Positions 7,662 through 43,366 of a stretch of DNA of 64,000 nt are shown here, in pieces. Origin of the DNA: Anaeramoeba ignava BMAN (lineage: Eukaryota > Protista > Anaeramoebae); contig JAPDFW010000136.1 of the NCBI GenBank assembly GCA_028826165.1, positions 496,001 through 560,000 of the forward strand, given 5' to 3'. Within the stretch, counting starts at the first letter, position 1. Every line of letters starts with the position of its first letter. The position numbers and the translations under genes are program-made. Below the pieces are notes generated by a model that saw only the letters and a program-made list of their open reading frames with translations, searched no databases and was not told the DNA's origin.

Positions 7662-7984
7662 TTTTTCTTATTATTAAATTAATTTAAATTTTAAATTAAA
7701 AATGAAAAAAATGAAAAAATAAAAAAAAAATTTATTTTAAATAAAAAATTTTTGCCTTCCTTTATTAATTTTTTATTTATTTAAAATTTTTTTTTTTTTG
7801 CTTTTTTTTTCTTTTTTTTGTTTTTTTAATTTAAAATTAAATAAAAATTGATTAAAAAATTTGAATTGGAAAAAATTTTTTTAATTGGAATTGATTAAAA
7901 AAATTGAATTGGAAATTGAAAAAAAAAAAGAAAAAAAGGAAATTGAGAAAAGAAAAAAAGGAAATTAGAAATGAATTTTAGAAA

Positions 7985-10900: not shown

Positions 10901-12219
10901 ACTCCAGTATTGATCATTGTTTGATTTTCTTTTTCATATCGATCTAAAAGACTTAATTGGAAATAAGCTGCAGAAACTGAATCAATTTCTTCTCTAAATT
11001 CAAGATATGCTTTCTTTTGTTTGTAATATTCAACTAATTTGTTGTATCTTGATTCATGTTGTTTGGAAATGTTAACAAGTTTGATTTGTCGATTTAATTC
11101 TGCATGAAGTGCTACTTTTCTTTCTTGTTCACATTCTTCTAAATGTAACATATCTTGAGCAACTTCTTTTAATGAGCATCCTTTTTCAGGTTTAAATTCT
11201 GGTCTTTTGTGATGTGATAATCTCATTGCTAAATTGTTATAATTTGATTCAAGATCTAATTGATCTGCAATTAATGAATTTTTATCTTTAGCTTTGTATT
11301 CGTAAAATTGTTCTAATCTTCTTTTAGCTCCAGCCATTGTATTATCTATTGTTCGATCTTCAAGAATCTTTTCAACTTTCTTAACAGTTGCTTTGAAATT
11401 GTTTGCTGTTTTGTTATATTCTGCTTTGAGTCTATCGTTTTCTTTGGTTAAAATGATTAATTTCTTGATTCTTCTTGCTGCTAAATCAAGTTTCCTTTGT
11501 TCTGCAATTCCATAATAATATTCACTAACGTAAACAACCATTGAATTTTCATCTAATTTTCTAATTTCATCAGGTGTAATATATTTTTCCAATCCAAAAT
11601 ATTTCTCAGCTGCATCTTGTGCAATTTCTAAATTCTTGATAGGATCATTTGAATTTAAACTATTCCAATCAATTAATTTTGGTCTGTGCTTGTGAATAAT
11701 TGCACATAAAGCTAATCCATCTGCAAAACTCTTTTTAAAATCAGTAACTTCAACACCTTTATAACTTGCAGTTTTGTTTTTACACCACATTAATAATGCA
11801 TCTTTGGCATTTAATGATTCACCTCCACTTTCATCATCAATTTTAATATATTTCATCATAATTCCCCAAGTTAAAGCTAATGCTGCTCTTGCATCACCTT
11901 TTTCTAATTGTTCTGCTGATGGTTTTACTTTCATATTAACTCCTTTACTCCATGCAAATTTCAAAGCATTGTTTAAGTTATCAATTCTGTGAACTGGCAT
12001 TCTAGGTTTTGGATTGATTTTTCCTTCATATTTTGATTCACTTAAAACTTCAATTAAATTCATTAAAACCAATCCATCTCTATAATCATCTACAACATCA
12101 TTTATTTGAATTTCTGGTCTTGTTATTAATAATTTCTGTTTAACCCATCTTGAGAAAATTTTTCTTTGTAACATAATCCATTCTTGACTTTTTGGTACAG
12201 TTATTCCAGTTCTTCTCAT
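7985..12219 (-). CDS. Alpha-actinin-like paralog 2 (about 1411 aa, intronless, four 139-aa rod repeats), split in the ORF track by a 1-bp homopolymer frameshift at 9525-9531
   Basis: ORFs 9499-12219 and 7985-9502 are colinear with paralog 1. The T run at 9525-9531 has 7 T, whereas the equivalent run in the next repeat (9941-9948) has 8 T. Adding one base restores a single ORF. Confidence 0.85.
9075..10750 (-). repeat. 417-bp (139-aa) coding tandem repeat, about 4 copies in actinin paralog 2 and 2 copies in paralog 1 (about 5350-6190)
   Basis: The LDDHLKREEFI anchor (plus strand TTCTCGTTT) recurs at 9491, 9907, 10324 and 10741, and at 5763 and 6180. Confidence 0.9.
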
Positions 12220-15300: not shown

Positions 15301-17853
15301 TTTTGGTGGTGGATAAAATTCTCAAAAGCATCCTTTTTACTGTACTTCACGACGGTGCTGATCGACTGCGGATGGTTCGAGCAATACTGTGTGTAGATCT
15401 TCAGGAAATCAACATATTTTTGGAACACTGTTCCAACGTTCATTTCTGCGACTTTTTCGGGATCTTTTTGGTAAAGCATTTGCAGTTCCTGTAGAATATT
15501 TGAGTTGACGCCGAAAATGGTTTCTATGGAGGAAAACATTGCGGAGATGTCCTTTTTGTGAACGATTGATTTTTCTCTGAGTGGTTTGAGATAGTACTCA
15601 ATAATCACATGCAGATCCTTGACATATTTCTCCTCTGTTTGAACCAGTTCTTGAATCACGTTTGCGCGCATGTTCATGTCAGTAGTTTTCCCCTGAAAAT
15701 CCTCTATTTGGAAGGACGTTTTTGACTGCTGAATCGGGTTGTTCATGACTGACAGCTCCTTTCTTTTCTTAATGATTTCTTCAGTTGATTGAGCCGTTTT
15801 ACTTGTTTCTTCAATTGAAATTCCCAATTTTGACGTGATGATTTCCCAGAACTGATTCTTGAGCTCCTCGGACTCAAAGCAGCATATAAACCGCTCCGGA
15901 TTATCTTCCACAAGAAATTCCACTGCGTGCTGGATTTGTCCCTTTTTGTCGTCTGACAAATCACGGATTTTTGATTTGGAATAGAAAATACAAATGTCAT
16001 AAGACAGTTGCTGGCTTTTTCTTTTCTGCTTCGCCAACAAAATCATATCGTTGAACATGAAGTACTGTCCTTGGTAGTTTTTAGTCCGTGAAACGCGCTT
16101 GAATCCCCCGTGCATATTCAGGATTCGCGAGCTTTCCATGATGTGTGTTGGTGAGTTCCCCATTTGCTTCTGGATATTGAGCAGTTGCGATCTTTTTTGG
16201 AAAATCCAAAAGTTCGAATTTGTGTCCCGAATTATGTTTCCACTTGTTTCGAGAATCTTCGAGATCTTAGATCCGACAGAAGTGTTTGGCGGGATAAGAC
16301 TGGATAATCTCTTCAGATTCTCCTCAAATTTTCGGATGTAAAATAACGGAAAAAGGAGAACGTGAAAAAAATCCTGTCCTATTCGCTCGTGTGAGCATTT
16401 AGCCACAACAGAGCGATACGGCTCGTTGTGCTTCTCGAGATCCTGTATTATTTGGTGCACAACCGTGTTTTGCTGATCCCACTGGCTGTAAAGTTCGAAA
16501 TTGATTCCCTTCAACGTGTCAATTATTGTTTCTGTTGATTTTGATTGTTTTTGGATATTTAAATATAAATTGATTTTTTCCGAAAGCTGTTTTGATTGGA
16601 TGATAAATCTTGTCGCGATTGAAAAAGTTGATTCGAATTCTTCTTTGTGCTGAGAAAGAGAGAGCAACGGGTTTTTCCAGATCTTGAAACAAAACGAAAT
16701 TATATAAATAAAAAAAGAGGAATATTTTTTGGAATGAAAAAATATTTGTGATTTTTACATTAATAATTTCGTCGAATTCCTTCTCGAATTTTTGCTCTTC
16801 TTCGAGAATTATTTTCAGAATGGGTTGCATTTGCGAATCGTCCTGAATAACGTTTTTTGGGCTTTTATCGCCTTCTGGTTTTAATGAAAAAGATTTTTGG
16901 AGAGGATACAAAGAGGCCCTCAAATTTGGTTGAGCAACGGAGACATTTCTTTGCAAATTGGACTTTGGTTTCTTAAAGATATTTGTATTTTGATGGGCTC
17001 TTGGCGAGGTTGGTTTAGCTGGGCTATTTTCTTGATTTGTTTTTGGAAAGTTGATTTGGCGAGTGAAACGATTGATGCTCTGGCGCTCGCTTTTCATTTG
17101 ATCTCCAGAAAAGGGTTTATTGGAGATATTTTGTTTGGACGTTGTTTCATTGCCGAAATTACTATTCGGACTCGGGCTATTTGCGTTGGAAATTCTTGTT
17201 TCCTTGGAAACCTGATTTTCACTGTTTTCTTGATAATATTGATTTGAGTATTGGATGTTTTTGTTCGGTTGTGGAAATTTAATTCTCGACATTTGCGTTT
17301 TTGTTTGTTGTTTATTTAGAGCATCATTTGGAATATTATTTTCAGGAAAATCATCGAACATTTTTTTCTTGGGTTTCGGAAACCTAATTTGATTTGTTTG
17401 CTTTGGATTATTCAAAGAATCCTCGTTTTTATTTGGAGAAATATTCTTGATTTTTTGGAATTTCATTGCTTGATTTTGCTGGTTTGAAAAAGCATCTTGC
17501 TTCTGGTTTTGATTGCCTTTTTCCACTGCAAATTTTTTGGGGGAAACGCTTTTGAATACTTGGTTTGAGTTTTGATTTTGCGCGATAGAAAATGTTGGTC
17601 GATTGAATTTCTCATTGATTTTGTTTTTCAAGTTATCCTTTGTTGATTTCTCGTTTTTGGACTTGTCAAGAACAATTCTCCCCTTTGAAACTGAGAATTT
17701 TCTTCTTGGAAACGATGATTTCTGTTGGTTTTCATTTGTGTTTTTTACAGAAAATGAATTTTTGATATTTTGGTTTTGAATTGGAGATTTTTTTATAAAA
17801 GAAGATTTCTGTGAATTTTGAAAAGCATTTCTATTTTGTTTAAATTGGCTCAT
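12351..17853 (-). CDS. Dbl-family RhoGEF: disordered N-terminus, degenerate DH-PH, then DH-PH; exons 17853-16759, 16682-14834, 12499-12351
   Basis: DH motifs RANVIQELVQTEEKYVKDL and LLIKPIQRICKYPLIFKELLKGT. PH motifs ERQFWLFTDVIVYGK and, in exon 3, FAFQIF...KQDWENKIKEQI. Junctions are GT-AG and in phase. Confidence 0.88.
12520..14815. repeat. 13-bp minisatellite (plus strand AAATATTTGATTT) filling the 2334-nt RhoGEF intron (12500-14833)
   Basis: Visible tandem array, irregular in the middle, with a GAATATGAATATTT sub-array near 14593-14660. Confidence 0.95.
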
Positions 17854-20950: not shown

Positions 20951-23900
20951 TCAATCAAGAATGACAGAAACACTGTTCAAAATCCAAAAACTTTCATGAG
21001 TTTTAGACTTGAAATAAGCATCAAAAAGATAGCCAACACCCATGGAATTATTCCTATTTTTTGTAGAATAAACAGGAGCAAGAAAAGTTCCTTGCTTCCA
21101 AATTTGGGATTGCTTTTTAAGACAAGGAATAACATGGAAAACAGGAAGAGATATAGAAAGTTGATGAGGAAGTTGATGAACAAGCGAAAGGGAAGAAAAA
21201 TCGAAGCCTGCACCTTCAAGATTAAGACCGTGGATATAACAACCGATTGAAGGAGAAGAAGAAACATTTTGCGGAGAAAGAAAGTGTGTGGGAACAGTAA
21301 ACATAATTGTTTGGTCAAGAGGCCACTTGTTCTCTCGACTTGCGATTTGAAGCACGGCATTAAGAAAAGTATCCGGAAATTTGAGACCAGGAAGCCACAC
21401 AACAAGAGGTTGCCCGTTTTTCACCCAATCAAGAAATTGAGTGTATCTTTTGCGGAGATGGACAAGCCAGGAAGATAAATTTTTGTCTGTTTGGGAATCA
21501 AGAAAAGCAGATGGAACTTCTCCAACAAACAGAGAAGTTTCGAGTGACTGCAGCTTGGTTGTCATGATTGCTTCTCCTTGCTCAGCTTTGGAAAGATCTT
21601 TCAGCACAGAACGGATATTCTTGATGAGATGGTTGAATTCCTCCAGTTCTTGGAAAAGTGCAATTTGTGTTGGAGATGGTGAATAAGTTTCGTCTTTCTT
21701 CCAACCCTTTTCAATAAATTTCAAATCAAAAGGCTCTTGAGGAAGCCATTTGGTTTCAATTTCTTCCACAATCCCGAGAATTAACGACTCTCGACTTCCT
21801 CCACGACCCAAGGACACACGCGGTTGAAGATCAACTAACCCGCGCAGAATTCCATCTGCTAATGAAGTAAGATGAGAAATCTGTGAGTTGGGATGCAGCC
21901 CAAGAACTTGTGGTGAGTCGTCAAGTCGCAGTCTTGAGATCCAATCCAGATAATCTTTTCTTGTTCCAACCGCCGGAATTTGGATCGAAATATTCTCTTC
22001 TTTATTTGTGTATAAACTAAATGGTTCGCCTGTCTTTTCAAAGATAAATTTGCCAAAATATTCGCTGAAATATGTGGAAAGAACTCGACGATCAAGTTCA
22101 TCAGTCACTCTCCCTCCGTATATTGCTTGTCCGAGAAGATACCGCAAGCTCTCCCAAGGAATTTGCTCTTTGTTTTGCTGCGCACGCGTCAAATATGTGT
22201 CGAGAATCTGCATGGACACTCGGAAATCGGAATCATTGAAATCATATTGCACATTCCAGGCACATTTGCCTAATTTTTTGCGCTCAAGAAGAACAGAGTG
22301 AAGAAAAGCAAGAACGAAGACAAGTGATTTGAATTGTGGATGTTTGCAATGAACAAGTTGAACATCACTGATTTTGTTGTAGATCGTATGCAGATTTAAT
22401 TGTATCGCATTAGGGGGTTCTAAAACAACTTTGAATGAATGCTGAAGAACAGACACAGGAAACAAGGATGTGGGTTCTGTTGTCAAAAACAGGCGGAAAT
22501 CCTCATGTACAGAGAATTTTGATTCGCTTTGTGATGGAGATGCAACAGCGTTGATCTTCTCAATAAAAATCTCAAGATTCTTCAAAAAAGAAGGCATTAA
22601 GTGGCAGTTTTGAAGAAGAACCCATTGCCCTCTTCTCACCGCAGTTTCTAGCATTTTCTGTGCAACTGGTTCTTGCCCTTGTCCCAAAGAAAGAAATTTC
22701 AATCTCGCACTGTATCCGAGTCCTTCAGCAAGCTTGAAAATATCTTCTGTTGGATCTGCTCCTGGAGAAAGCACAAAGATGATAGGAGTGGTTTGTGTGC
22801 TGAATTCGTGGAAAATATCTGCGTAATTCAGTGTCGGCGGATGGATGAACCTCTCTCCAAGATGTGAACTAACATACGAGCTGAGTGATGAAACAAGACG
22901 ATCAGAACGCAAACATCTCAAAAGCATCAACATTTGGAATCCACTCACATCCCCACAAGGCGGAACTATTGCCTCGGGCTTGCTTGAAAAAACCCACAAT
23001 TTCCATTTTTCTTCTTCAGCTTTGATCTGAGAAAGGAGAGATTGGAACATATTTTCTGAGCGATCCGAAAGTGAGGATAATTGTTGCAAATCTCTCCAAT
23101 TTTTCTGCGAAATCCATTCAGGATTTTCTCCTCTTTGTTCATCCTGTAAAGAAGTGTTTCCTCTAAGAAGAAAGTCCAATTCTGGCTGCGAATATCCGTG
23201 AATATTGAGGGCGAGTTGGAAAGAAAAGAGCAGTTTGTGGCGTTCGAAAAGGCCTAAACACATGGAATTATATGCGCGCACCATCAGTTCATCAATGATA
23301 TTCTGCAATCTTGAATCAAGATTGTTTGCAGGCTGGGATTGCGTTACTGAGGATTCAAAAAGCGACAAAAATGAGCTCATTGAGACTTCATACATTGAAT
23401 TGAGTTCAGCCATCGATGCCATGGTGAAGAAAATAGAAGAGCCTCGTTTGGCAACGACCGCATAGCTTTTCCGTGCTCGATCAATCTCAGCAGCAGTTAT
23501 TTCCGACTCTTTCAGTTTCGTGTTGATTTCTGATGCCTTTGTTTTCGTTGTTTCTAGCATCTCAATCAGAGGAGCGTCGTCCAGAATATTTCCCTGACTT
23601 GATGCGAGCTGATGTAGAAGCTGATCCTCAAGTTGCTGAAGCATCAAATGGCTCTGGTTCATTGAATCAATCAATTCGGTTCGACTCTTCTCAAGATCTG
23701 CCCGCTCGATGCCAACAACAACATTCAAAAGCTGACTTTCCAATCCATATTCAGTCACCTTGCAATTTACAACACGAGATTTTCCAAATATTTCAGGCGA
23801 AAGTTCAGGGTTCTGTTGCTTTGTAGATAGATACAACATGAAGTCATCATCCCAATCTACTTCTTTATCCGCAACATTCACTGTTTTTCTCCCACCTGTT

Positions 23901-26900
23901 GATTTGAGGTTTTTGAACAAAATTGGATCAACAACAGGATCAAACCCAGAATCTGCTCCCTCAAAAACAAAGTGCTTCCCGTACTGAATCGCAAGGACAA
24001 GCTGTTGGAGGAAATTATTTGTATCAAAAGTTGATACATCCAAATTTTTTGTATGTCTTTGTTTGATCCACCGAACAAGCTGGTTTTGAGGATCAATAAG
24101 AAGCGGAAAGCGCATGCCTCTCCCAAAAGAGGCCAGAATCCCATTCTCTACTGTTGTTTGATCTATTGGCAACCCCTCAGATTGCCATTTGTTGATTTCG
24201 GCATCTGTTGTTAGTAATTCTTGCACTTGAAGTGTTGATGTGAGTGGTATTTCTTCTTTAGTAAGCTTGTGCTTCACTTCTTCAAGAACTTTGGCGCGAA
24301 ATTCTGCATTCAAAGGTCCGCAATAACCCAGAAAGCTTGCGCACAAAAGACAATCGCCTACAAGTCGCGTTTTTCTCTTTTTCAGTGACTGGGATTGTGC
24401 AGTCCATCTCAATTTCTCTGCTCCCAATCCCGTGATAAGTTGGCTCGCGCGAAACAACCGTTCTTGCATAAGTTGAGCTTGTTTCTTCAATAGTTCCAAT
24501 TCTTGTGTCGCCTTTTCATATTCCATTTCAAACTGGCGAAGCATTTGAGAGAGAGATTCTACTTCTTTTTGGATTTTGTCGAGTTCCTTTTGCGAAATTT
24601 CCAAGCTGGCTTGTGCAGTTGCAACTTTCTCTCTTTTGGGAGCAACTTCCAATGCTGTTGAATAATAATTGACTACCGCTAGCACCCAACTGATAAGTCC
24701 TGTTCCTGCAGAGGATATTTTCTTCATCGAAACGACATTGAATTTTGGATGCTTCATATATTCTTGCACCGCATTGATTTTCTGTTGTGTTAAAGTGTCA
24801 AGATCAAATTCAATCAATTCACGAAGAAAACTTGTAGAGGCCATCATCGCCTTTGCACCGCTCCAGGAAACATCCGAAAACCCACGGAGAATCACAACAC
24901 ATTCACATACACTCCGCACAAGTTCAGGCGGATTTGCAAAAGCTCGAATCTCAACAAGATCACCCCTATTTAGGTTCGACAATGCTGAACGAGCCTTTTC
25001 AAGCACAGGCAATGCTTTTTCAAGAACGGCTTCTGCTTCTCTTTTCTCTTGAGAGATCTGCTCAAATTTTTCCGCAACTTCCCGTTCCTTTTCTGAAGAC
25101 ACTTTTTTTTTCTTCTCGACTTCGCTTTTTCTCGCTGCAATTTGATCTAATAAGTCCTCGCTTGCCTGCGTTTTTTCTTCAACAACCTTTTTCTGTACTG
25201 CTAAGTTTTTTCTCAATTGCTTCACTCCCTCTTCGGCTTCTGTAAGTTTCTCCAGTCCACCTTCAATACGTTCCAGTGTTTTTTGGTTTTCAGTGATTTT
25301 TTCTTTAAGGAGAATCAGATACTCTTTTAAAAAATCCAGATAAATTTTGGGTGTAACAAAAATTTTTCTTCGGTACTTATGCTCGAAAATTACAGTGTTT
25401 TGAATGGCGTTCTGATGGGTTTCTACAAAAACTTCGATTAATCCCTTGATTAAACCCTTTCCCTTGCCATTCTGGGCAAATTCGCTAACAAAGTTCTGCA
25501 TTACCAAATTTTCCGAAAGAAGTTTTTGTCCGACCAAACGAAGCGCATCCTCGGGCCAAGTCTCGCTCATCCAATCAATTATCGTGTTGTTAAGAAGTCC
25601 CGGATATTTCGGGAAAAGCTGTCGCAATTGTTCTCCTGGCGGGAAACACAAGCACAGCCGTAAATTTTCACGACATTTTGTGATGAAATAATTCCAACAA
25701 TCTTCACGAGAAGCAAAAACTCCCGTCTCGCTGACTTCCTCTTTCAAGGAGTTTATAATCGGCTCTTTTTCTTCTTCAGAATATAAAGTGCCCACAAACG
25801 AAGTGAGCATAGAATTGATTTCCTCCATGAAACTTTCGTGAACTAGCTCCGCGCTAGTAAAAAGGAAAACAACCTTTTTCTTCTCCACTCCTGTTTTTAG
25901 ATACAATTTTTTCAACGCATCCAAAAAATCAGCTTTCCCGAATGTGCGGGTTAATTTGATCTGGAACAATTCGTATCCTGCAATAAATGCGGCCAATTTG
26001 CTGATGCTTTTTTTGCCAATCCCGTCATTTCCTATCATCAGGGCATTTCCATATCTTTGGCGTAAGATTCGATGAATTCGAACAACTTCGCAGATAAAAT
26101 TATCAAAAAGAACAAGATCCATTGGCTCATCTGGATATTTTTCATTATATTCTTCCAGCTTTTGATCAATGAAAAAACGGACATTCTCGTAATCCCCAAG
26201 ATCTTCATAAATTCTTAGCAATTCATGCCTTCTTCTTCTTTCTTCTTCTTCTTCTTGTGTTTGATCAATGAAATTCTCTTTTTCATTGTCCTGAAAAGGT
26301 TGGTCTGGTACCACTTCTGCTTTCTGCTTCGCTTTTCTCGCAATCTCACCAAAATCACCAAATAAAATGGGATTTCGGACTATATCTTCAATTTCAGTTC
26401 CGTTCAAGAAATCTGCAAAATACTTGCGCAAAGTGCCCTCAAGTTTTTGATCAACAAGAATGCGATCTTCTTCCAGAATTAGTCGAGAAGAAAAATTCAG
26501 CAAAACCTCGTTTCTCCATAGTCGAAGGAAGGAGGTAATTGATTTAAACTTCTGGGATGTACTCAGTACAACCAATCCATCATAAACGCGTGAAATATCA
26601 CGAAGACTGAATGAGTAATGGAATTTTGTTTGGGAAGGTCGCAAAGAAAGCGTAATTTGTTTAAATAGATCAAGAGTCATATCGGTCAAGCGAGAAGAAA
26701 TCGCATTTTGAATTTCAGAATTAAAAAGCGAAAGATGCGAATTCAGAAGGGAATCAAATATCATCTTGATAATGTGGGGTTGTGGAGAAGGGATATGCAT
26801 CACGTTGAATAGGGAAATGAATCGCGGATCAACTTTCCCAGGCCTCATTGCCGCTATTATCTGGACATCTCGAATTTCAATCCAGCTTAGATCTTTGTCT

Positions 26901-29900
26901 CTTCCATAAAATCCGTTATATTCAATCAAGTGCTTGAGAAAGGCTGTTGTTTGTTGAGTTTCATACTCGTCTGGTTGGGGCATGTTCAGATCATCAATGA
27001 ATATGATCAATTTTTTTCCCAGAGTAGGCCCATAAACTCCTCGTGTTCGCTTTTCTATGTGATCTAAAATGGTATTTTGGATGAACCGACTTGTTGTGGT
27101 GTTTGTGAGATTCAATTTCAAAATTGTATGACTTTCTCTCGCCAACGATCTCAAATAATTTTCAATAATTACTGTTTTGGCAGTGCCTGTGTGCCCAATA
27201 AACAAAACTGGCTTGGAAATTTTCACAAACAAATCAAGCAGAAAACCGTATCGAACTGTATCTGAAGTACTTACAAGCATCCCGTCAATAGAAGGATCAT
27301 ATGGGTGCGAGAGCTCTTCCCACAGTCTCCATTTGCCTTGGATCTCATCAAAGAAACAATCAAATAGTGTGTGCTCTTTTGGGAAAGTGCCAAAGCTTTC
27401 GTTTTCATTTCTCAAATAAATCTTCTTGATTACCTCATCCAATTCCTTTCGGGAATCAGCAACTAGAGATGAGCCTATTGACCAAATAATTGCAAAAATG
27501 AATATTGATTCAACTGTCCAAGGATCATCAAGCACTAGCTTTCCATTTTGTGTATTTTTGGAGAGGAAAGAATCCAAAATAGTCGTCAACTGAAATATCA
27601 TATTGTTTTTTGTTTGTGGGATGATTTTTGGTAAATCTTCGCACACAGCAAAACATTCAGGAAGATATTTTTGATAAAGCATATGAAAAAGATGCTCCCT
27701 TTCTTTACACAGAGATTGAACCTCATCGTTTGATTTTTGGAGTTCTACCGAAATTACAGGAATTTCTTCCCTCATTCCAAAATCAGCTTGCATTGATTCT
27801 TTGGCAGAAAAGCGTTGCTTACTCCACTTCATAAATAAAGAAAGAGGAGTCACGCTTGAGCTATCCACGTAAATCATGCCGCATCTTGATATGGTTGCTG
27901 GTGATGCAAACCGGAGATCTGAAACTTCGAATAGAAGTGAGCAGTGCGGTTGTAATCTTATTCTCTCCCCATTGGGAAGTACAAGCAACTTATTATCATC
28001 CATCAAGGAATTCATATCCTCCACGTATCGCGCATCAAGATCTCCATCAAGAAGGATTCTACGGAATTCATTTGCATCTTCTCCTAACGGCTTGTTGATT
28101 TCTCGGAAAATGCTACTGAAAATGCCGTCATTCCAATTTCTTGTCACAGTATCCAATTTACCATACAGCTCACTTAAATCAATTGCCTTTGGGTTCAACG
28201 CATAAATTTTGGTTTTATTGCCAAGGATTGTCATCGCCTTCGATAATGTTTGGATGATAGTGCTGTTGTGCGTGACTGTTCCGTCTGAAAGAAGAAATCT
28301 CTCCTCTTTGTTTTTAGGCTCTAGTTGAAATCCATAGAATTCGTTCTTTGCCTTTGCATAAATTTTCAATGGATAATAAATTAGAAATGTTTCTCCACTA
28401 AAAAAAATTCCAAAATGATTTTTTGGGGATTTTTCTATCAGATCAATCTCGTCCCAAATGTTTGAATTTGCAAATTGAATAAGAACAACACCTTCTTGCT
28501 GATTTACTCTCCAGAATTCCATTTTCTTTTCTTTGGCGAAACAACAGATCATTTTTCTGAACATTTGAAAAAAGATGAGCTCTTCTTCTGTTCGAATTGG
28601 GAAAGATAAATCAAAATGATCTTCTTTTTTACTGAATGAAATCCCCATAAAGGAATATATTATTCCTGCAAGAAAAGTCAAGAGATTTTTTCGAGCTTGA
28701 TCATCTCGATCCAAATTGATTTTATCAAATTGTGCCATTTTTTCACATCCTAATTTCACAATTTTATGTTTTTCTTTTTGCTGTTCGCATTTTGAGAATG
28801 CGCTCCCTATGATAAATCCAAGAAGAAAAGGCTCTTCATATATCGTTTCAAGTTTCAGATATTCAATTCGAAACCTCCGAAAGCCATAATGTTTTCGTTT
28901 CCATTGGGGTGATTTTCTGAGATAGCTCCTTATGGAAATATCAACTACTCGCATCTCTTCAATATTGAAGAGAGACAGAATATGGAATTCATTGATTTGA
29001 TAACTGATGCCAAGATACTGTTCAATTTCAAACATCTTCCCAAATCCGCGAGTTGTTTTCAGAACTTTTCGAGGCTGGAAATCATCTCCCATTACAAATT
29101 CACCTTGTTTAATTTTATCTACAAATTTAGCTGTATTGTTGGACATGAGAATTGGGGTATTTTTGCCTAAGCACTTTCCCGATCTGGTTCCACCCACAAG
29201 CATTACTGTGTGTCTTGTTTGCATGGTTTCATATAATTGAATCATCTTCCCAATTTGGTGCGGAATTTCTTGCAACGCCTCCATTTCCAGCGCTTGCTTG
29301 ATCGCAGAAACTAAATCTCCATTTAATTGAGGATCATTGATTGCGACATCAGGGAACATATCTTGAACTAATCCTTTAAACAGCGGGAGATCAAATTCCA
29401 CCATCTTGGGTTTGTTCGAATCTAAAATGGCTTTCATCAAAACATCCTCTTCTTTTTCTTCGGATTTCCTTTTCAAAGAGCCTGCCCTCACAAGAACACT
29501 TTTGACGGCTCTTAATCCAAAATCATAATGCAATTGTTTGGAGAGCTGAATCTTCGCTAATTTATAAATGAGAGCCATTTTCTTAGCGAGTATTTTGGCT
29601 TGGGAAAATCCTTCCGAAAAAAGCATGATTTCGCATATTAGCGATGTATCTGGCACTGTCATTACCTTTTTAGATGAATTGTGATAGTTTTTTTTTTTGA
29701 AAAAGATTTGGAAAGAATTGTTATTTTTTGTTTTTCTGAATTATTTCACTGTTTGAACTTGCTTACCACGGGGCGAAAGAGAGCCTTTAAAGAATCTGGG
29801 AGTTCAGAACGACCTAAATATCCAGGATTCATGGTAATGTGAAACCCACATTTGGGATCAAGCGTTATTTCGCGATTTTCGAAACTGAACTTTTGGGTTC

Positions 29901-32900
29901 CAATCTGTAATGCGTTTTGGATCGTTTTTAATTGACTGGAAACAACTGATAATGTTGCTGGTTCAAGTCGATTGAATTCATCAAAGCATCCCCATGCTCC
30001 GCATTGAACAAGACCAGCAAAAAAAGAGCTCATTACTCGATAATCCATTCCTTCTCCGCAATTTATCACAACGCATTTCAACGCTAAAGCTTTTGAGAGA
30101 TCCCGAACAGATTCTAGAAGAGAAAAAGAAAAATGTTTGTTTTCCTTTCCCAAATAAAAAAAGAGAAGCAATATCACTTACCCGTTTTCCCTGTTCCAGC
30201 TTGTAGAATCGAAAATAAGAAGAAAAAAAAAAAAGATAAAATGAGAGATCTAAAAAAATCATTCCCATTTTGAAAGTTTGAGAAATTAAAATGATTTACC
30301 TGGACCTGCAGGAGCGGAACCCAAATTTAGCGACAAAGCTTGTGTGACAGTGAGATTCATTCGGTCAGTTAAAGGAGTAATCACTAATCTTCCGTTCAAT
30401 CCCATATATTCATATCCATATTCGAATTTTCCTGTTCCTTGTCTCACTACAACGGTGTCTTCTTCTCTGTCCCAATAAAATCTTAATTGAGATTGCCACT
30501 CAAATTGTGTTTCGTCAGGAACTGAATCTCTCACTAATTTGCTGACAACTTCTCTTGCATGAACATCAATAATAATCATTGTATTTAATTTCTTTCGATC
30601 TTGCTTTGTGAGATCGGTTTGGATCACTTGTGTAAGATCTGAAATTTGATCGGACAATCGCTCGAGTAATTTTTTCATTGAATGCAATTCGCCTTGTTTC
30701 ATCATTTCAAACGCATATTCTACTTGGAAGGTCCAAAAGATCTGACTTCCAACAAGTGAAACCATTCCTATTTGTAATTTGGGAATTTTTGGGGATGAAT
30801 TGATTTTCATTTGTTTTGTATTTTTCCAAACAATTACATACCTGGATATTTTCGGATCCATTCGATTCGTGGAATCTTGGGATAGTAGAATAAAGCTTCC
30901 TTGGTTAAAAGTCGCAAACTTTTCCTCATTTCTGCTTCAACATTTGTCATCCATGTCTCGACATTTCCCTCCACAGGAACGGAATCATGAAAATTGAGAT
31001 GTTCTCCTTCTGGGGAAATCATTCCATCCACAATGTAGGAGGATTCTTGGTTCTCAGAAAAGGAGCCAATTTTGCGAAATTTGAGAGAAAGGGTGTTATC
31101 AAATAACTTAATGATATGCTCTTGGATGCTAGTTTGGTCGCTTGTTCCAAGAATGCTGAGAAGATCGTCATCGGAAATGAAATAGAAACGCGGAAACAAA
31201 GCCCGTTTGTAATCTAAATAGTTCTTCAGACTTTTTTGGCATGATTCTAATTGGTTCAACAACGATTTGAGGAACTCTAATCTCCCTTCCTGGAGACAAG
31301 CTTCCAGTACATTGGGATTTTGTGCGGTTTGGCTCATGATCTTACTGAAATGTTTATCGGCACCAGAAAACTTTTTTGCTTCTTGAGGTAACTGAGCAAC
31401 GATATCTTCTGAATTAAAAATGTTCTCTAAATAAATCCATTTCTTCTGCATTGATATCCACACCTCGATCACTTCCGAAATCAAAGAAAGTCTCTTTTCC
31501 CACAATCGAATTGAATCAGTGAAGGGTTCTGCAAAAGGAGATGAGCTCATTGACTGCACATTCAAATTCTGTTCGTCAACAAGAGTGATGATCTCATCCA
31601 CAGAGCTCAAGACAAGTCCTCGCTCCTCATTCCCCCGTGAGTACTTTCTGACTTCAAAATTCATTGAGTGCGTCCATTTTTCTTCGATCGAAAAAATCTC
31701 TTTTTCGATTACATCTTCTTTCATGGCTCTTATAGTTATTTGTCCAATTATATCAGCGAATCTGGTTAATTCCATTTGCAAAACACTTCCAAGAGTGAAG
31801 TTTTTTGAACCAAGCGCGAAATTTGTGTTTGTGCTGGATTGAAGTTGTTGCCAATGTCTTGGTTGAAGAGATGGGTTTTTCAAATCTTGTATTAAAGGCA
31901 TATTGTGCTTGAACTCCAGAATTTCCTTCTCGATCCCTGTCAAGAGTGCAGATTTCTTATATTGAGGAATTTTGTCAAGCTTTCGTATTTTGGTTTCGAA
32001 ATCTCCAATTATCTGGTTCATTTCTTCAAGTGCTAAATCCTGCCAAAGTGTATCGCACCAAGATTGGATTTGTTCTTTTTGTTGTTTCCACAGCTCGAAA
32101 AGTGGCTTCAAAATATTGAGCTGCTTTTCAATTATTGTCAGTGATTCGATAGAATCAATTTCAAGATGAAAAAGTTTATACTCCTCATCTGTCTTTTGCA
32201 CTTTCTGGAGATTCTCCTCGAACAATTTGAGGAATTTCTGGTATATGGAAAAAGAGTCATTTATTGATATACTGTTGTTTGTGAGTAAGTTTTGATTTTC
32301 GAAATCTTTTGCGAATGCATCAATCTCTTGGGAGATGGTTTTCCTTTGTTTTTTAGTTTTTTCTGCAAAATGGGCTTTTGTTTGCTCCAATCCTTTTTCT
32401 GTTTCAGAGGCTGTCATTTGCAAATTTTCTTTTTTTTCTTGAACGGAAACTAAAATTTCTGGAAGATTTGCCTTTTGTTCTTCTTTTTCATTTTGTTTCG
32501 GTTCAATGTCGAATTTCTCCAAGATTTGGATTTGTTGAGAAATTTCCTGAATTTCTTCGTTCATTGAAACAGCACACTCTCTAATTTGGGAAATTAAATT
32601 TAGAATTTTTTTCAAATCTGGAAGATCGCGAATTTTCTGGTTTTTTGTATGGAGAAGATCCTGTAAGAGGCTATCTATTTTGGAATCTAATTTGATTAAA
32701 TGTTGTTTCACGTTCTGGATGAGAATGTTTCCATATCGTTCGTTTTTCCATTTGCGAGCTTCATATCTTGCGATGCTTACCAAAGATTTTATATTAACAG
32801 CAATAAATTGATTTTCCAGATTTTTTTCTTTTGAACTGGTGGATTCCATTTCTTCAATTTGCGAAATGATATTGATCCATTCTTCGAATTTCAGTTCGAA

Positions 32901-35900
32901 ATGATTCAGTGTCAATTTTTTGGATTGAAATTGCTGAATCTGTTCAATCGGATCTACAAATAGAATGAGGATAAATGTATCCCAATCCTGTTGTATTTTT
33001 TGCGCAAGGAATTGTGTTCTTTCTTGGGTATATTGGTCAATTTCTTTCATGAGCTGCATTAAGTTTCCATTTTTCAAGACTTCATCCCGAAAAGATGGAA
33101 CAGATAATTTATCTCTTCCCGGTATTTTTTTCGGTATTTCTTTGATACATGTCCCTGAAATCCAACGAATAAAAAATTTACTTGAATCAACAATTTCTTG
33201 TATTGTTTGGCCGATTTTTTCTTCCAGTTCTTTCATTTTTGGGGAAAAAGAAATACCAGAAGAATCCATGAAAGCTTGAATTTCGATCATCTCTTTTTTG
33301 TTTTGAAATTTACTAAAGAGCAATTTCAAATTATTCTCAAGCATCTAATTTATGAAGAAAAAAAAACGAGAATAGAAAATTGCATAAATAAGGTAAATTA
33401 CGAGAGGTGTTTTATATGTGTATTAATTTTACATGCGTAATAGCTTTTTGGATTTCGGTTTCTATCAAGGAATAATACTTTTTGAGTTTTGGAGACGAGT
33501 TCGTTTTGGTTCCAAAAATAATTTGCTCAATTTGCTCAATGTATTTCGGTATTTGTGAATATTTTTGGATCATTTCCTCAACTTTTTGTTTTTTCCTGGA
33601 AGATAAAAATTGAAAGAAATGCTCAAATTCCATGACTTGATCAGGGAAAGAAAGTAAAATGGATTCTCGTATTTGTGCCAAGGTTGTGTCAATTTTCTGA
33701 GTCCAAGAATCCACTTTTTCAACTAATCCTTTAAGTTCGTTTACAGACTAATTCAAAAAAAAAACCGATGGTTAGTAAAAGAAAAAAAAAGAACAAATTA
33801 GAGAAATACCTTTTGTCCTTTTTCAATGAATTCATTTAATGATAAAGTAGTCAAATTAATCACAGAGAAACAAGGCTTGAGTAAATTCAAAACATTTTGA
33901 ATATGTGGGTGCATAATATGACTTTCACGAGAATGTATTTTGGGGATGATTTGATTATAATTGTTTACGAGGCATTCAAGTTGACTGCTCAATGATTCAA
34001 ATCTGGGCATTTGAAGTGCAATTTCATTGGCAAATTGAGGAATTTTTTGCTGAAAACCAAGATTATTAATCTGATGAATTTGCGTAATCATTTCAAATAA
34101 TGAAGGAGCAATATTAACTCGCAGGAAAAGTCCATCTCTCTTTAAAACTGCGTTTCTGGCAGAGGGAACCAAAGTAGAATTGATATTTTCGTTGAATTGC
34201 GCTATTACTTGTTTATTAAATGACAAAATCTTTCTGCCCACCTGAGAGTATTTTTTGATAATTAGAGCACCTTTTTGAGACTTGAAGTTAAAATAAGAAG
34301 AACTTCGAAATGTAAGCATGGGGCTTTTGATTTTCAGAAAAAGATCCAAGCTCCATTCAAGAATTTGCGATGTTTTCCATTTTGTTTTTGTTGACTTTTC
34401 ATTTTCGAATTGGTGGTCAACTGCGTCAATTTCAGCCGAAAGCATATCCAGAACAAGAGAAAATTTCTCACTCTCAGTAATTTCAAACATTTTCAATAGT
34501 TCATAGCAACTTTGTGAAGAGTTTAGAGTATGGAAAGTTTTTTCGAGCAAAAGATTTGTTTTGGATTGTGTGTTTTGGGACATTTTGTTGAATGTTTTTT
34601 TGAATATAATCCATTTGGATTTTTCTTCTTTGTCATTACCAAAAGGCTCAAAATCAATTTCTTGAGCAAGATGGAAAATCTTCTCCCGATCGTGGAAAAT
34701 GGAGCGTTTCGTTTCCAAATCCTCTTTTGATCCAAGCTTTTCAATCACAATTAAAAATTTGTCGATTGTTGCCAATTTTTGTTTCATTTCAATCAAATCA
34801 TCACAAACTTGGTTTATGTAATCAAGATGATTAAAAAGGATTGTTCGGTCGAATTCCCATCGATTCGCTCCTTTTGTTTTTTCAATTTTCGCACGGGTTT
34901 CTAAATATCCCTTTTTCACTTTCATCGTGATTTGTTTTGCTTGATCGATTTCTTCCTCTATATCAAAAGAATCAGGATTATTATTTATTTCTGCTTTATG
35001 ATCTGGATGCGTGTTGCTTATTCCACATAAATCCCTTTCATCGATATCTTTTTCTTGAACAAAAGATTTCATTTGGTGTTCTTCTCTTCCAAAAACTTTT
35101 TCAGCAGTCACTTTGAATTGGATTGCCTGCTCAATATCCAAAATAATCAATTGGAGCAATTCGAACATCAATTGATCTGTATTGTAAAACTTGCTGAGAA
35201 TCCAAATCAATCGGAGTGAATCAAAAAGATTGGGCATATTTTCTGCAATTTCCCTGAGACTGTGACTGGAAACAATTATATCAATGTGATTCTCCAAACT
35301 GTCAAGAAATTTTGTATTTTCGCGTGCTTGATTGGCGAGATTTGATAACTCTGTAAAATATTGGTGAAATTTCCGAACTAGTGCTGTGTCTCGTTCACCG
35401 GAAAGTATTGTTTTGATTGTGGTTTCATTTTGCTGAAATTGCGAAACCATACTTGAGAAAATGGAGTATCGGTCTCTCCAGTAATGAATTTCAGACATTG
35501 CTCCTTTTCCATATTTTTGTGAGTCTTTTTCGATTTGAATAACAGAAGTGATTGATTTGATCCATTTTCGGATGATTTTTTGATAATTATTTTGCGTGAT
35601 CTTTTCAGATGGCTTTTGCATTTGATGCTGATCTCTATTTGTTCCAGAGGAATTGATGGAATCAAAAATGGAACCATTTTGTTTCCAATTAAACGAAGGT
35701 TTTGCTCGAGAATTTGATTTTGTGAAAAGATGTTGATTTGGAGGATTGCTTTGGGTTTTTGTTTGAGAATTAAGAGAAGTATGCGGCATTTTGATATGGA
35801 TTTTCTGGAATGTTTCCATTCGGTGTATCGCAGCGGAAAGTGCTTTTGAGAATTGCTTGATCATAATTCCAGATTTCTGGTTTTGGAAAAGTGGATAATA

Positions 35901-36287
35901 CACATTCTGAAGAGTACTATTGAATATTTTGAGAGAATTTGCACTGTTTAAAGTCGCAAACGAAAATTCTTGTTTTTGATCTCTGTTTTCTTGGTTTATG
36001 AAGTAAATGGAATCGTTGTTTGTGGTTATTTCTTCAATTAACGATGATTGAGGAGTTGATTTTGAATCTTCAATAACATCAACTCGAATATTTTCTTTTT
36101 TTTTCGATTTTTTTTTTGGAAGAGAAAAAATGATCGCTTTTGGTTGATTTGCAATTTTTTGGATTGCTTCTTCTAGTTCCTTTTGATCATGATCATCAAA
36201 AGAATTCGAATCTTTTGAAAAATGAACAAAAACTAAATTTTTCATCCAATCAATGAATGAAAGTTCTGTATTCTTTTCTTGATCCAT
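20951..36287 (-). CDS. DNAH10: Axonemal dynein heavy chain, DNAH10/I1-alpha-like, intein-containing (about 4947-aa precursor, about 4644 aa after protein splicing); exons 36287-33810, 33747-33433, 33344-30842, 30767-30300, 30199-30182, 30113-29767, 29665-20951
   Basis: Six GT-AG introns of 62-101 nt join all ORF pieces in frame. Motifs include FPRFYFISDDDLLSILG, GYEYMGLNGRLVITPLTDR, GPAGTGKTE, WGCFDEFNR, ITMNPGYLGRSELPDSLKALFRPVV, ICEIMLFSEGF and QLSKQLHYDFGLRA. The AAA3 P-loop GHTGTAKT and the C-terminal MGVGYLFDA...FWIL resemble DNAH10. The start codon and subfamily are inferred. Confidence 0.9.
28265..29173 (-). mobile_element. Intein (303 aa, class 1, degenerate LAGLIDADG homing endonuclease) in the dynein AAA2 Walker A motif
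   Basis: In-frame insertion GGTRSGK|CLGKNTPILMSNNTAKFVDKIKQGEFVMGDD...SYQINEFHILSL...EFYGFQLE...RFLLSDGTVTHN|STIIQTL. It has Cys1, a block B NxxH, block F, a terminal His-Asn and a +1 Ser. Removing it restores GxxxxGKS. Confidence 0.96.
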
Positions 36288-37524: not shown

Positions 37525-40500
37525 ATGAGCAATTCACAACAAATAACAAAAGAAACAGAAGAAATGAATTTAGAACAAGAAGTAATTTATTCTTTATTTT
37601 TAATTCTTTATTCTTAATTCTTTATTCCTTTTTTTTTTTAGATCCCAAACCCAAATGAGAATTCAGATGATTTGAAATCAATAATTTTGGCTTTAAAACA
37701 AACACTCACAGAAACAACAACTCAACTTAACCAAAAAATCTACGAACTCAAACAAACAAAAACAGAACTGGACAAAACAAAAGAAATGAACGAATTTCTG
37801 AATATCGAAATATCCACAATCAATGAATTGGAAGCGGAAAAAGAAAAAGAGGCAAACTCAAGAAAACAAAGACAATCTTTTCTTGATGAAAACGATACAC
37901 TCAATTTCAAGAATAATGAATTTACTGAACCTAACGACAAAGACAAAGCTTTAAAAGATCTTTACCACAGCTTGCAAGAAAGCGTAAGTTTAGCGGAGTT
38001 CTGGGAAAGTTCTCATAAGGCAGTTACTCAAAAAATGGAAAAGCTTGAAGAAGAATACAACCGACTAATTTCTGAAAAAACAAGCAAGGAAGGGAATTTT
38101 GTTGAATATCAACAACAAATCGAAATACTAAGAGCCGAGCTCACGGAATGCCAAGTTCAGAACCAAGAACTCACGTACTCACTCGATGATCAGCTCGAAT
38201 CACAAAGACTTGAGGTTATCAAGCTACAAGAAGAAAACAACAAACTCCGCCAAAACGTGATAAATTTCCAACGCCAACTCCAGCAAGAAAGTGACAAGAG
38301 TTCTCAACAGCAAACAAGCGCGATAATGGATGAAAACCGAAAACTAAAATCGGATTTAACGGAACTCTCGCAAAAAAACAGAGAGCTTCAACAAGAACTT
38401 GAAGAAAACTCCAATTTCAACAGCAACAAGAACTTCCAGCAAGTGATCCAAAATTACGAGTCCAGATTGCGCACTCTGACTGAAGAAACCAAATTTTATG
38501 AAGACATCATTAGTCAATCTTTCCCTGAAAAGGACAACAGAATCCAAAAATTGGAAATCCTAAACCAATCCAAAAGCACTGAATTCGAGCAACTCAAAAA
38601 GGAGCTTGAAAACGAAAAAGCTGCTAAGGCTGAGCTTGTCTCGAAGATTAAAACTCTTGAAGCTTCAAACAAAAAAATCACGCAACTCAACACAGATTTA
38701 ACGTTCCAAAACGAGTTTCTGGAAGTAAAAGTCTCTGAATCGAAAAACAAACTTGATAGATTGACTGCAATGAACCAAGAAGTCACTGAGGCTAACGGCA
38801 AATTCCAATCCCAAATTGGAGAATACGAAGATCAATTAGAAATTGCAAACCAAAAAATTACCGAACAAAATGAGCAAAATGAAAGCGATAAAAGACTTTA
38901 TTCTGAGCAGTTGGATCAGTTTGTGCTCAAAAACAATCAACTTGAAAATGAAATTTCGAGTTTGATCTCCCAGACCAAAAATGATAAAATCCTTTTCCAA
39001 AAACTTGAAGAGAAGTTTTCGTTCTCTCAATTCATTATTGAGAACAACTTCCAAGATCTCAAAAAGTTACAAAATGAAATTTTCGAAATTGAAGCAGAAC
39101 TCGAAGATTCACAACAACAGATTCAGGATTATCAAAATCAATTTGTAAATTCGCAAAACCAAATTGAAAATTCCCAAAAGCAGATTGAATTTTCACAAAA
39201 GCAGATTGAAGACTCACAAAAACAAATTGAAGACTCACAAAAACAAATTGAGGATTCGCAAAAGCAAATTGGAGACTATCAAAAGCAAATTGAGGGTTTA
39301 AAAGAACAAAATGAAAATTCAGAAAAAGAAAATGGAAATTTACAAAAGCAAATTGAAGATTTAAAAGAAAAAATTGAAGAATTTAATTTACAAAAACAAA
39401 CCATGAAACCCATTTCTGAAATTGAGGAAATCAGAACCAACTTTGAAGACAAATATCAAAAATTAGAAAATGAAAGAAATTTGTTAATGGAACATATTTC
39501 ACTTAAAGAAAAAGAAAATGAAACATTAATCAGCTCAAATGAAGAATTGAAATATTCGCTCAATTCATTAACAAATCAAAACAATGAAATCAAAGAAGAA
39601 AAAGAATTAATGAACCAACAAATCGAAAAGAGTAAAATTGAAATTGAAGAATTATTCCAAGAAAAACAAATAATTGAGGATGAATTGCAAACAACACAAG
39701 ATTTGATTTCTAAATTAAAAAAAGAATATGAATTAATAGAATATCTTTATGAAGAAGCTAATCAAAAAAATGAAAATGAAATAACAATTATTGAACAACA
39801 AAAACAATATCTAATTGAATCAAAAAACCAAGAAATTCAAAATTTAAAAGAACAAATTATGAAACCCATTTCTGAAATTGAGGAAATCAGAACCAACTTT
39901 GAAGAGAAATATCAAAAATTAGAAAATGAAAGAAATTTGTTAATGGAACATATTTCACTTAAAGAAAAAGAAAATGAAACATTAATCAGCTCAAATGAAG
40001 AACTGAAATATTCACTCAATTCATTAACAAATCAAAACAATGAAATCAAAGAAGAAAAAGAATTAATGAACCAACAAATCGAAAAGAATAAAATTGAAAT
40101 TGAAGAACTATTCCAAGAAAAACAAATAATTGAGGATGAATTGCAAACAACACAAGATTTGATTTCTAAATTAAAAAAAGAATATGAATTAATAGAATAT
40201 CTTTATGAAGAAGCTAATCAAAAAAATGAAAATGAAATAACAATTATTGAACAACAAAAACAAGATCTAATTGAATCAAAAAATCAAGAAATTCAAAATT
40301 TAAAAGAACAAATTATGAAACCCATTTCTGAAATTGAGGAAATCAGAACCAACTTTGAAGAGAAATATCAAAAATTAGAAAATGAAAGAAATTTGTTAAT
40401 GGAGCATATTTCACTTAAAGAAAAAGAAAATGAAACATTAATCAGCTCAAATGAAGAACTGAAATATTCACTCAATTCATTAACAAATCAAAACAATGAA

Positions 40501-43366
40501 ATCAAAGAAGAAAAAGAATTAATGAACCAACAAATCGAAAAGAATAAAATTGAAATTGAAGAACTAAAATCACAAGTTCAAATTACAGATGAAATTGAGA
40601 AACTTCAAATCCAAATTTCTCAAATCACAAAAGAAAAAGAAGATGTGATCGAGGCAAATCAAGCAATCCAAAAAGAAACAGAAATGTTAACAAAGCAAAT
40701 TGAAGATTCACAAGAAATTATTAAAGAACTTACGCTAGACAAAACCGAAAAATCTGATTTACAAATTCTTTACAATCAAAAATTAACGGAAAATGAAAAT
40801 CTTCAAAAAAAAGTTGATCAATTAATCCAATCAAAAAAAGAAACTGAAGATCATTTATCAGATATTGAGAAACAAAACAATCAACTTAATACAGCAATTA
40901 TTCAAATCCAAAACGAAAGAGAAGAGTTCCTTGAAAACCTCCAGAAAAAGCAAGAATCTGAAAAACAAAAAAATGAACTTATGCAAAAAAACAAGCAATT
41001 AGAAATTCAAAACGAAGAAATTGATGATAAATATCAAAATTTGAAGGAAGAACTTTCTTCCAAAAATGAAGAATTGAATACTAGCACTGAAAAAATAAAT
41101 GAATTGGAATCAAAACTCAACAATTTAGAAAAACAAAAACAAGAAGAATATCAGAATCAAATTGAAGAATTAAGCTCTTCAAAGCAAAAAATCATTTCAA
41201 TAATAACCCAAATTGTTGATTTACAAGATGAACCTGAAGTTGAAGAAGATGAAATACTTTATAATTTAAGTGAGTTATTCACTAATACTCAAAATCAAAA
41301 TGCACGTTTATATCAAGAAAAACAAGAAATTGAACAAAAAATTGAAGAATATCAGAATCAAATTGAAGAATTAAGCTCTTCAAAACAAAAGATCATTTCA
41401 ATAATAACTCAAATTGTTGATTTACAAGATGAATCTGAAGTTGAAGAAGATGAAATACTTGATAGTTTAAGTGAGTTATTCACTAATACTCAAAATCAAA
41501 ATGCACGTTTATATCAAGAAAAACAGGAAATTGAACAAAAACTTGAAGAATACTCAAAATCAAATTGAACAATCCAGTAATATATTAATCGATTTGAATT
41601 CTAAAGAAGAAGAAATAAACGGATTGAAAAAACAATTATCTGAGTTAACTCAAAACAACGAAATGACTGAAACAAAGTTGATTGATGCTCAAGTCAAATC
41701 AGAAAATTACCGAAATCAAAATGAACAACTCCGAGAACAATTATCACAATTATCAAACTCAAACACTTCAAATGAGAATCAAAAAGACAATGGACAAACT
41801 GTAATTTTAAGATCAAAAGTTACAGAACTTGAAAATTCAATCAAGTCGTTACAAAATCAGAATTCGTTATTAGAAACCAACATCAAAGAAATGGACCAAC
41901 AAATTAACAAAAAGGATTTGGATTTGAAAGAACAAAAAAAAGTTGAGAACAAATTGAATGAACAATTAAAAATCTTTTCAGATTTGAACAATCAAGTGAA
42001 AGTGCAAGTGCAAGAAATTGAAGATACAATGACACAAAAAACGCAAGAAATGAGCTCAAGAATAAATGAAAAAGAGGATGAGATGCAAAGTCTGGAATCA
42101 AAAGTCCAAAAATTGCAATCAATGATCTCGCAAAAAGATTCCGAAATTGAGAAATACATTTCACAAATCAAAAACAGCAATGAAGAGATTCAAGAAAAAT
42201 CGAAACAAATCGATGACTTGAATGAATCGAGATTACAAACTGAAAAAGAACAACACAATTCATGGAAATCATTTGTTGAAAAAATCCAACAAATTTTCTC
42301 CAAGTCAACAATTCCTTGTGAAATTGATTTCAGTTACTTATCAGTTGGAAATGAAGATGAATCAAATGAAAAACAAAAGACGAGCAAATTATCACAGTTA
42401 TTGAAGGATATTTATGCATTCCTTGAAACAAAAATATTCCCCAAATTAGAAGAACTGAATGAAATTTTATTAGAATTAGAAGATTCAAAAGAAACCAAAC
42501 TTGAAGAAAGCCAGCAAGCCACAAAAATAGATCAAGAAGTTCAAGTTGCACCTTTTGAAATTGATATCGATCTAATTAAGAAATTTTCTTTGAGTAAGGA
42601 TGAAGATGAACAACAAGAGATTCTTTGTGATCACATCAAAGAATTGGAACAATCACTCCAATTCAAAAGCGAAGAGTTTGAAAGTTTGAAAAAGGAGCAT
42701 CATGAACTTTGCAATACTTTGGTAGATCAAATGGATGATGAAACTCATCAACTTATCAAAGATGTTCTTTATCATTTCAAAGATCAAGAAATTTGCGAAC
42801 TTAATGACACCCTTCACGAAAAAGATGAAGAAATTAACGATCTAACAGAACAATACTCAAAAGTTCTTTCGAGAAATCGAGAATTAGCAGTAAGAGTCAA
42901 AAAACTTGAACAACGTTTGGAAAATCAAAAAGTTACAAAAAATCAACCGAATAATTCACAAAGAGAAATGTCATCAATTATCCCTTTTAAAAATATTAAA
43001 AATGTTCAAAATATTCAAAATATTCAAAATGTTCAAAATGAAATTCCTAAAAAGAAAAATCCTCAAAACCAAATTTTCAAACCAAAAACTTTACGTTTTA
43101 CTAAGTTTGGTTCAATAGGATTAGGATTAAAAAGAACAACAAATTTAGGTCAACCAATGAGAATTAAGAGAACAATTTCAGAATCAGAAAATGAACGTGA
43201 TAATAAAAAAGAACAAAAACCCCAAAAAGAAGATGATGATGAAAATATTTCTTTCTCAGAAAATATTCCAAAAAGAAGTCATTCAGATAATAATGATAAA
43301 TTATTTAAAGAAGAGTCAAATGATTTGAGTTTATTTGATTCAAAAAGAACTAAAATTATTAATTAA
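37525..43366 (+). CDS. Large coiled-coil protein (about 1930 aa) with internal repeats; exons 37525-37581 and 37642-43366, with an apparent +1 frameshift near 41553
   Basis: E/Q/K-rich heptads throughout. ORFs 37672-41568 and 41471-43366 overlap. At the third repeat junction GAATACTCAAAATCAA has one extra base compared with GAATATCAGAATCAA in the preceding repeats. Confidence 0.75.
39403..40566 (+). repeat. 456-bp (152-aa) near-identical coding repeat, about 2.5 copies; also a 201-bp repeat (41143-41550) and 21-bp SQKQIED heptads (about 39150-39300)
   Basis: ATGAAACCCATTTCTGAA occurs at 39403, 39859 and 40315. GAAGAATA occurs at 41143, 41344 and 41545. Confidence 0.9.

Follow-up and report, generated by a model that had tools for sequence, protein, structure and literature searches.

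The dynein axonemal heavy chain 10 (DNAH10) gene of Anaeramoeba ignava contains an exact in-frame insertion of 303 codons at its AAA2 GK|S site, which stays in the spliced mRNA and is in all likelihood a class 1 intein with an inactivated endonuclease, splicing constitutively and persisting as a parasite. The window is the whole stretch of DNA that was analysed (64,000 nucleotides), and the host gene lies on its minus strand. The protein specified there is NCBI KAJ5066878.1 (UniRef100_A0A9Q0L893) of A. ignava, 4947 aa, with 100% identity from residue 2044 to the end (2904 residues). Its NCBI name is "intein-containing dynein axonemal heavy chain 10 precursor"; the host is listed among intein carriers by Gallot-Lavallee et al. 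(PNAS 2023; PMC10710043). The intein is, in consequence, already known: the initial annotation, made from the sequence alone, was right to suggest an Anaeramoeba source and a comparison with published intein lists, and its claim to novelty falls. The main text of PMC10710043 gives neither the AAA2 site nor the state of the endonuclease for this intein.

Position of the insert and its retention in mRNA

The insert occupies nucleotides 28265–29173 of the window (minus strand), without a stop codon, and corresponds to residues 164–466 of ORF 20951–29662 and to residues 2208–2510 of KAJ5066878.1. Translation, Pfam, ortholog alignment and the NCBI protein all bear on this placement. It begins CLGKNTPILM and finishes SDGTVTHN, and is flanked by the host sequences GGTRSGK and STIIQTL. 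The former (29174–29194, minus strand) is the end of the N-extein and represents the AAA2 Walker A motif of DNAH10, where the orthologs mostly have G-P-T-G-G-G-K. The first residue of the C-extein, the +1 Ser (28262–28264, minus strand), is the Walker A Ser/Thr, present as one or the other in every ortholog motif printed, and would act as the step-2 splicing nucleophile. In an alignment with DNAH10 orthologs the 303 insert columns hold no residue in 10 of 10 sequences. Human DNAH10 (PDB 8j07_k8) aligns as far as the Walker A Lys, and query residue 467 resumes at chain residue 2238. The 909-nt insertion that separates Lys from Ser in the AAA2 Walker A, and the clean gap of 303 residues against orthologs, had both been put forward in the initial annotation and are borne out.

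An in-frame intron, or an artefact of assembly, might be suspected from base composition, the insert being slightly more AT-rich (GC 0.33) than its flanks (0.38–0.40). Against this, in three runs (two samples) the insert lies within single contigs. The X3 and X4 contigs cover it without a break (28265–29173) and leave out four introns of the same gene, two of these listed as joints and two seen as gaps on either side of an 18-nt piece. Neither run is registered as RNA; both are read as RNA-derived because their contigs carry spliced joints. Among the sequences removed from contigs that retain the intein is a 101-nt GT-AG intron (29666–29766, minus strand). Run X1 covers the whole stretch, introns included, and may have been what the assembly was built from. 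A transcriptome protein of EukProt (P0171, 4974 aa) also retains the insert, at residues 2235–2537, with a single Ala/Val difference; this is a variant also seen in the runs, and two further variants within the intein are silent. With the Hint sequence and predicted Hint fold described below, the probability left to an intron or artefact is negligible, and this reading was rejected since the spliced contigs retain the insert. The retention in RNA that the initial annotation had proposed to look for is found in the X3 and X4 contigs as well as in the EukProt protein.

Splicing and endonuclease domains

The insert matches Pfam PF05203 (Hom_end_hint) with 49.4 bits (cut-off 32.1; E-value 7.5e-13), the match covering aa 1–75, while the NCBIfam intein models gave no match on it at E 1. 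The N-terminal Hint region (approximately aa 1–102; 28868–29173, minus strand) includes Cys1 (block A) and N61-x-x-H64 (block B). The C-terminal Hint region (aa 269–303; 28265–28369, minus strand) includes block F, here of the form Y-G-F (G281, F282) with no Cys, and block G, which ends in His302-Asn303. Cys1 and His64 are invariant among 91 relatives (alignment rows), and Asn61, Gly281, Phe282, His302 and Asn303 are nearly invariant in comparison with 90 related inteins. The residue set C1, H64, H302, N303 and +1 Ser is that of class 1, and neither the WCT nor the block F Cys of class 3 is present.

An AlphaFold model made from the single sequence was unusable (pLDDT 48.6) and was replaced by one based on the 91-row alignment, which reached a mean pLDDT of 82.3, with an all-beta Hint domain at 91–98. 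The top Foldseek matches of this model were PI-SceI/VMA1 (E-value 2e-12), followed by Cryptococcus Prp8 inteins. From sequence and model, the Hint fold and all splicing residues are intact, splicing itself being predicted as probable, and the insert is highly likely to be a class 1 cis-splicing intein of the VMA1-like Hint family. Splicing has been confirmed for only three Anaeramoeba inteins, all of them other than the DNAH10 one (PMC10710043). The assignment agrees with the initial annotation, which had recognised Cys1, a block B His, a YG-type block F, the terminal His-Asn and the +1 Ser, had called the element a class 1 intein with VMA1-like blocks, and had advised a search with Hint profiles, which PF05203 has now answered.

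The middle of the intein is occupied by a decayed LAGLIDADG endonuclease. In motif 1 (block C, aa 114–126; 28796–28834, minus strand) the consensus W-L-G-D-G is replaced by I-I-G-S-A, so that Ser124 stands where 58 of 90 relatives have Asp. Motif 2 (block E, aa 166–177; 28643–28678, minus strand) has changed from L-A-G-L-I-D-S-D-G to L-A-G-I-I-Y-S-F-M, with Tyr173, Phe175 and Met176 at positions where the relatives have Asp (84/90), Asp (58/90) and Gly (79/90). Pfam detected no endonuclease in this region at E 0.01, whereas several relatives do match. The alpha/beta scaffold of the domain persists in the predicted model. Homing competence depends on two LAGLIDADG motifs with catalytic acidic residues; here both motifs are without them, and the intein is therefore very probably no longer able to home. 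The initial annotation made no mention of this domain.

The Sce VMA1 intein (PI-SceI, PF05203), the top structural match, shares with the DNAH10 intein Cys1, the N-x-x-H of block B, the block F Gly and the His-Asn end, as well as a Walker A-adjacent site in an ATPase. It differs in length (about 450 aa versus 303 aa), and the two show 13–16% identity in the structural alignment. The DNAH10 intein is further set apart by its decayed endonuclease motifs, by a +1 Ser rather than Cys, and by a host and site other than those of the VMA-a allele.

Relatives and origin of the intein

A search of the same genome with the DNAH10 intein yielded 48 matches. Thirty loci were read, and most of these inteins lie directly after a P-loop GK. 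The hosts, named from flanking motifs except for the SRP receptor, are SMC, RecQ, Lon, RFC-like, MCM, eRF3/HBS1-like, eIF5B, ABC, XPB-like, SRP receptor and cytoplasmic dynein proteins; a few relatives sit in Prp8, a P-type ATPase and a phosphatase. The A. ignava genome has about a hundred parasitic inteins, and the DNAH10 intein looks like one of them. In a library of 1.84 billion proteins, 4958 match it at E 0.001. GK precedes 138 of the 169 related inteins cut from the top library matches, a set in which a few C-terminal boundaries were mis-called by the pattern used. Insertion directly after the P-loop GK, to which the initial annotation had drawn attention, is the position of most relatives read in the genome and in the library. 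The closest 40 relatives show 43–47% identity over the Hint regions and share the GK|S/T site; no close sister of the DNAH10 intein was found among the library relatives compared.

The metagenomic helicase and ATPase inteins at this GK|S/T site share the 43–47% Hint identity, and that of P0002, a superfamily II helicase, starts CLGKDTPILM after the P-loop GK, much as in DNAH10. Most of them retain both LAGLIDADG Asp residues, in contrast to the DNAH10 intein, which has neither, and their hosts are not dyneins. These sequences probably derive largely from giant viruses and phages. A viral ancestry of the family would follow from the argument made for cluster 15 of PMC10710043, to which these GK|S/T inteins probably belong. 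Some of the metagenomic ATPases (P0003, P0006, P0009, P0012, P0020, P0021, P0026, P0028 and P0080) have two inteins in or beside one Walker A motif, either back to back (His-Asn then Cys1) or separated by three residues (G-x-x-G | intein | S/T-G-K | intein), and such tandem inteins at one P-loop looked unusual.

A tree of the Hint regions (173 rows, 143 columns; quick search, SH-aLRT 81–82, no bootstrap, poorly resolved) places the DNAH10 intein in a weak group that also includes a Prp8 intein and 14 others from the genome. Since the group is made up mostly of inteins from the same genome, it fits spread within that genome; it names no donor. A sister intein elsewhere in the assembly has Hint regions identical to those of NCBI KAJ5073537.1. 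The Prp8 gene (C98:194201-205816; loci L035 and L036) holds at least four inteins that were read directly and a probable fifth. One of these is at the AKWK/TAEE site, described as new in strain BMAN (PMC10710043).

The cytoplasmic dynein 1 inteins of A. ignava share with the DNAH10 intein the genome, the protein superfamily and a location at P-loops, but their sites are in AAA modules other than AAA2. The AAA4 intein belongs to the same Cys-start family, whereas the AAA1 intein starts with Ser and does not resemble this family. A direct transfer from the AAA4 intein was considered and rejected: this intein takes another place in the tree and is outside the 40 closest by identity. It groups apart from the DNAH10 intein, and a simple dynein-to-dynein jump is therefore not supported. 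Cytoplasmic dynein is recorded as carrying three inteins (PMC10710043); in the assembly it is represented by three near-identical copies (C35:450071-465906, C92:273313-285486 and C113:171902-184993) with three P-loop inteins each. Two of the copies are at contig ends, and the ORF of the AAA1 intein on C113 is shorter or split. Neither a second dynein with a DNAH10-type intein nor an A. flamelloides ortholog was found among the best 120 of 861 database matches (names partly shortened).

Host gene, splicing and persistence

The host gene, located with tblastn of the NCBI protein, extends over 20951–36287 (minus strand), contains spliceosomal introns and specifies the 4947-aa precursor; the full-length protein is that of the public NCBI record, by reference to which the exons were matched. 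Pfam reveals the dynein heavy chain domains in order across the rest of the ORF and three upstream ORFs. The best PDB and database matches, in tail and motor, are to DNAH10/I1-alpha, and in the tail the I1-alpha matches (E-values 1e-106 to 1e-64) are followed by the next class at 9e-44. On this full domain set and these matches the host is assigned to DNAH10, inner-arm I1(f) alpha type, an axonemal chain as had been proposed. An 18-nt microexon (30182–30199, minus strand), which appears as a separate piece in the X3 and X4 contigs, supplies the residues G-T-G-K-T of the AAA1 Walker A and lies between introns 30114–30181 and 30200–30299. This Walker A is cut by two introns (30114–30299); the cytoplasmic dyneins have an intein at the AAA1 Walker A site and an intron just upstream. 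The arrangement resembles an intron/intein pattern described in PMC10710043.

The usual partner of DNAH10 (I1-alpha) in an axonemal heterodimer is I1-beta (DNAH2). Three Pfam searches, with every first-look candidate scored, and a protein search were run over the entire assembly and place dynein heavy chains at only four loci: the DNAH10 gene and the cytoplasmic-type genes on C35, C92 and C113. These searches found no DNAH2, outer-arm, single-headed inner-arm or IFT dynein in the assembly, and DNAH10 is probably the sole axonemal heavy chain of this strain. No description of a lone axonemal heavy chain was found in the literature searched, and the case is of interest for research on flagellar reduction. 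RSP3, SAS-6, IFT57 and IFT38 were likewise not found in the assembly; with no positive control and an intron-rich genome, these blanks do not show absence. PACRG (C58) and a gene with three DM10 domains, Rib72/EFHC-like (C1), are present.

The Walker B Glu required for catalysis is missing from AAA2, a non-hydrolytic site with constitutively bound ATP (10.1101/2020.09.22.308700); the block imposed by the insert would therefore be structural, not catalytic. The AAA2 Walker B region of the host reads like those of the orthologs. In an unspliced precursor the ring itself would be obstructed structurally; the motor would not simply be short of one hydrolytic site. Splicing would be needed for the DNAH10 ring, which says nothing on its regulation.

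We consider it highly likely that splicing is constitutive and that the intein persists as a parasite. To judge from intein chemistry, the 4947-aa precursor would be translated with the intein inside. An N-S acyl shift at Cys1, assisted by His64 of block B, would be followed by attack of the +1 Ser, by cyclisation of Asn303 with the assistance of His302, and by an O-N shift, with constitutive release of a 4644-aa dynein in which the AAA2 P-loop is restored. As to its history, the intein, one of a large family favouring the P-loop GK|S/T sites of unrelated NTPases, may have reached AAA2 through non-allelic homing; a donor locus elsewhere in the same genome is more likely than direct entry from outside. 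The endonuclease would then have been lost, and the intein would persist as a selfish passenger in a conserved site because imprecise loss would destroy the P-loop. The case would be a clear instance of an intein spreading non-allelically from one P-loop to another, here into a non-hydrolytic AAA2 site.

Two other readings concern the fate of the intein. The initial annotation had proposed that splicing could gate flagellar motor maturation, in which case the intein would be a domesticated switch, its conditional splicing (for example, through redox state or metals at Cys1) tied to the change from amoeba to flagellate. The insert must presumably block the AAA2 P-loop until it is removed, conditional splicing is known for some inteins (PMC10710043), and PMC9323006 counts A. 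ignava among the flagellates that have a tapering flagellum. The splicing residues have also been kept although the endonuclease has decayed, but the same would be expected of passenger inteins wherever the host gene is under selection. Nothing indicates conditional splicing: dozens of relatives reside in unrelated housekeeping genes, PF05203 is absent from the other 119 DNAH10-type proteins listed (best 120 of 861), and the host gene is present in transcript data, with no sign there of stage specificity. The searches of the assembly, which gave no match to another axonemal dynein heavy chain or to RSP3, IFT38, IFT57 or SAS-6, also tell against the proposal, and a lone, divergent DNAH10 without its partners weakens the gating of a conventional flagellar motor. 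A domesticated switch is very unlikely, and the gating proposal is not upheld; should splicing prove conditional, it would amount to post-translational control of a motor.

The same lone chain, found without its usual partner DNAH2, could instead point to a splicing-impaired intein in a relic of a flagellar apparatus that is being lost, where efficient splicing is no longer selected. In the motor region the host shows 44–49% identity to its orthologs, which have 51–75% among themselves, and in the ortholog alignment its AAA2 and AAA4 motifs drift. The proteins of Anaeramoeba are generally divergent, however (37.3% mean identity between the two species), and the AAA1 Walker A/B and AAA3 motifs are intact. 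The gene encodes a full-length product of 4947 aa free of stops and frameshifts, and is spliced and represented in transcript data; all splicing residues of the intein are in place, and PACRG and the Rib72/EFHC-like gene remain in the assembly. Such a relic is very unlikely. A combination of the two ideas, in which a sole axonemal dynein (no DNAH2, outer arms or IFT dynein) serves a reduced flagellum or a non-flagellar job and conditional splicing times its motor activity, is most unlikely.

Elsewhere in the window, a pair of long A-rich ORFs (1298 and 631 aa; 37672–43366, plus strand) without a Pfam match lie head to head with the dynein gene and probably represent one large coiled-coil protein. 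Two tandem alpha-actinin-like genes with CH domains, spectrin repeats and EF hands are found at 4257–12219, the second of which appears to be split (ORFs 9499–12219 and 7985–9502). A RhoGEF/PH gene (14796–17853), a class I fructose-bisphosphate aldolase (47556–48509) and a RhoGAP fragment (53037–54161) are also present.
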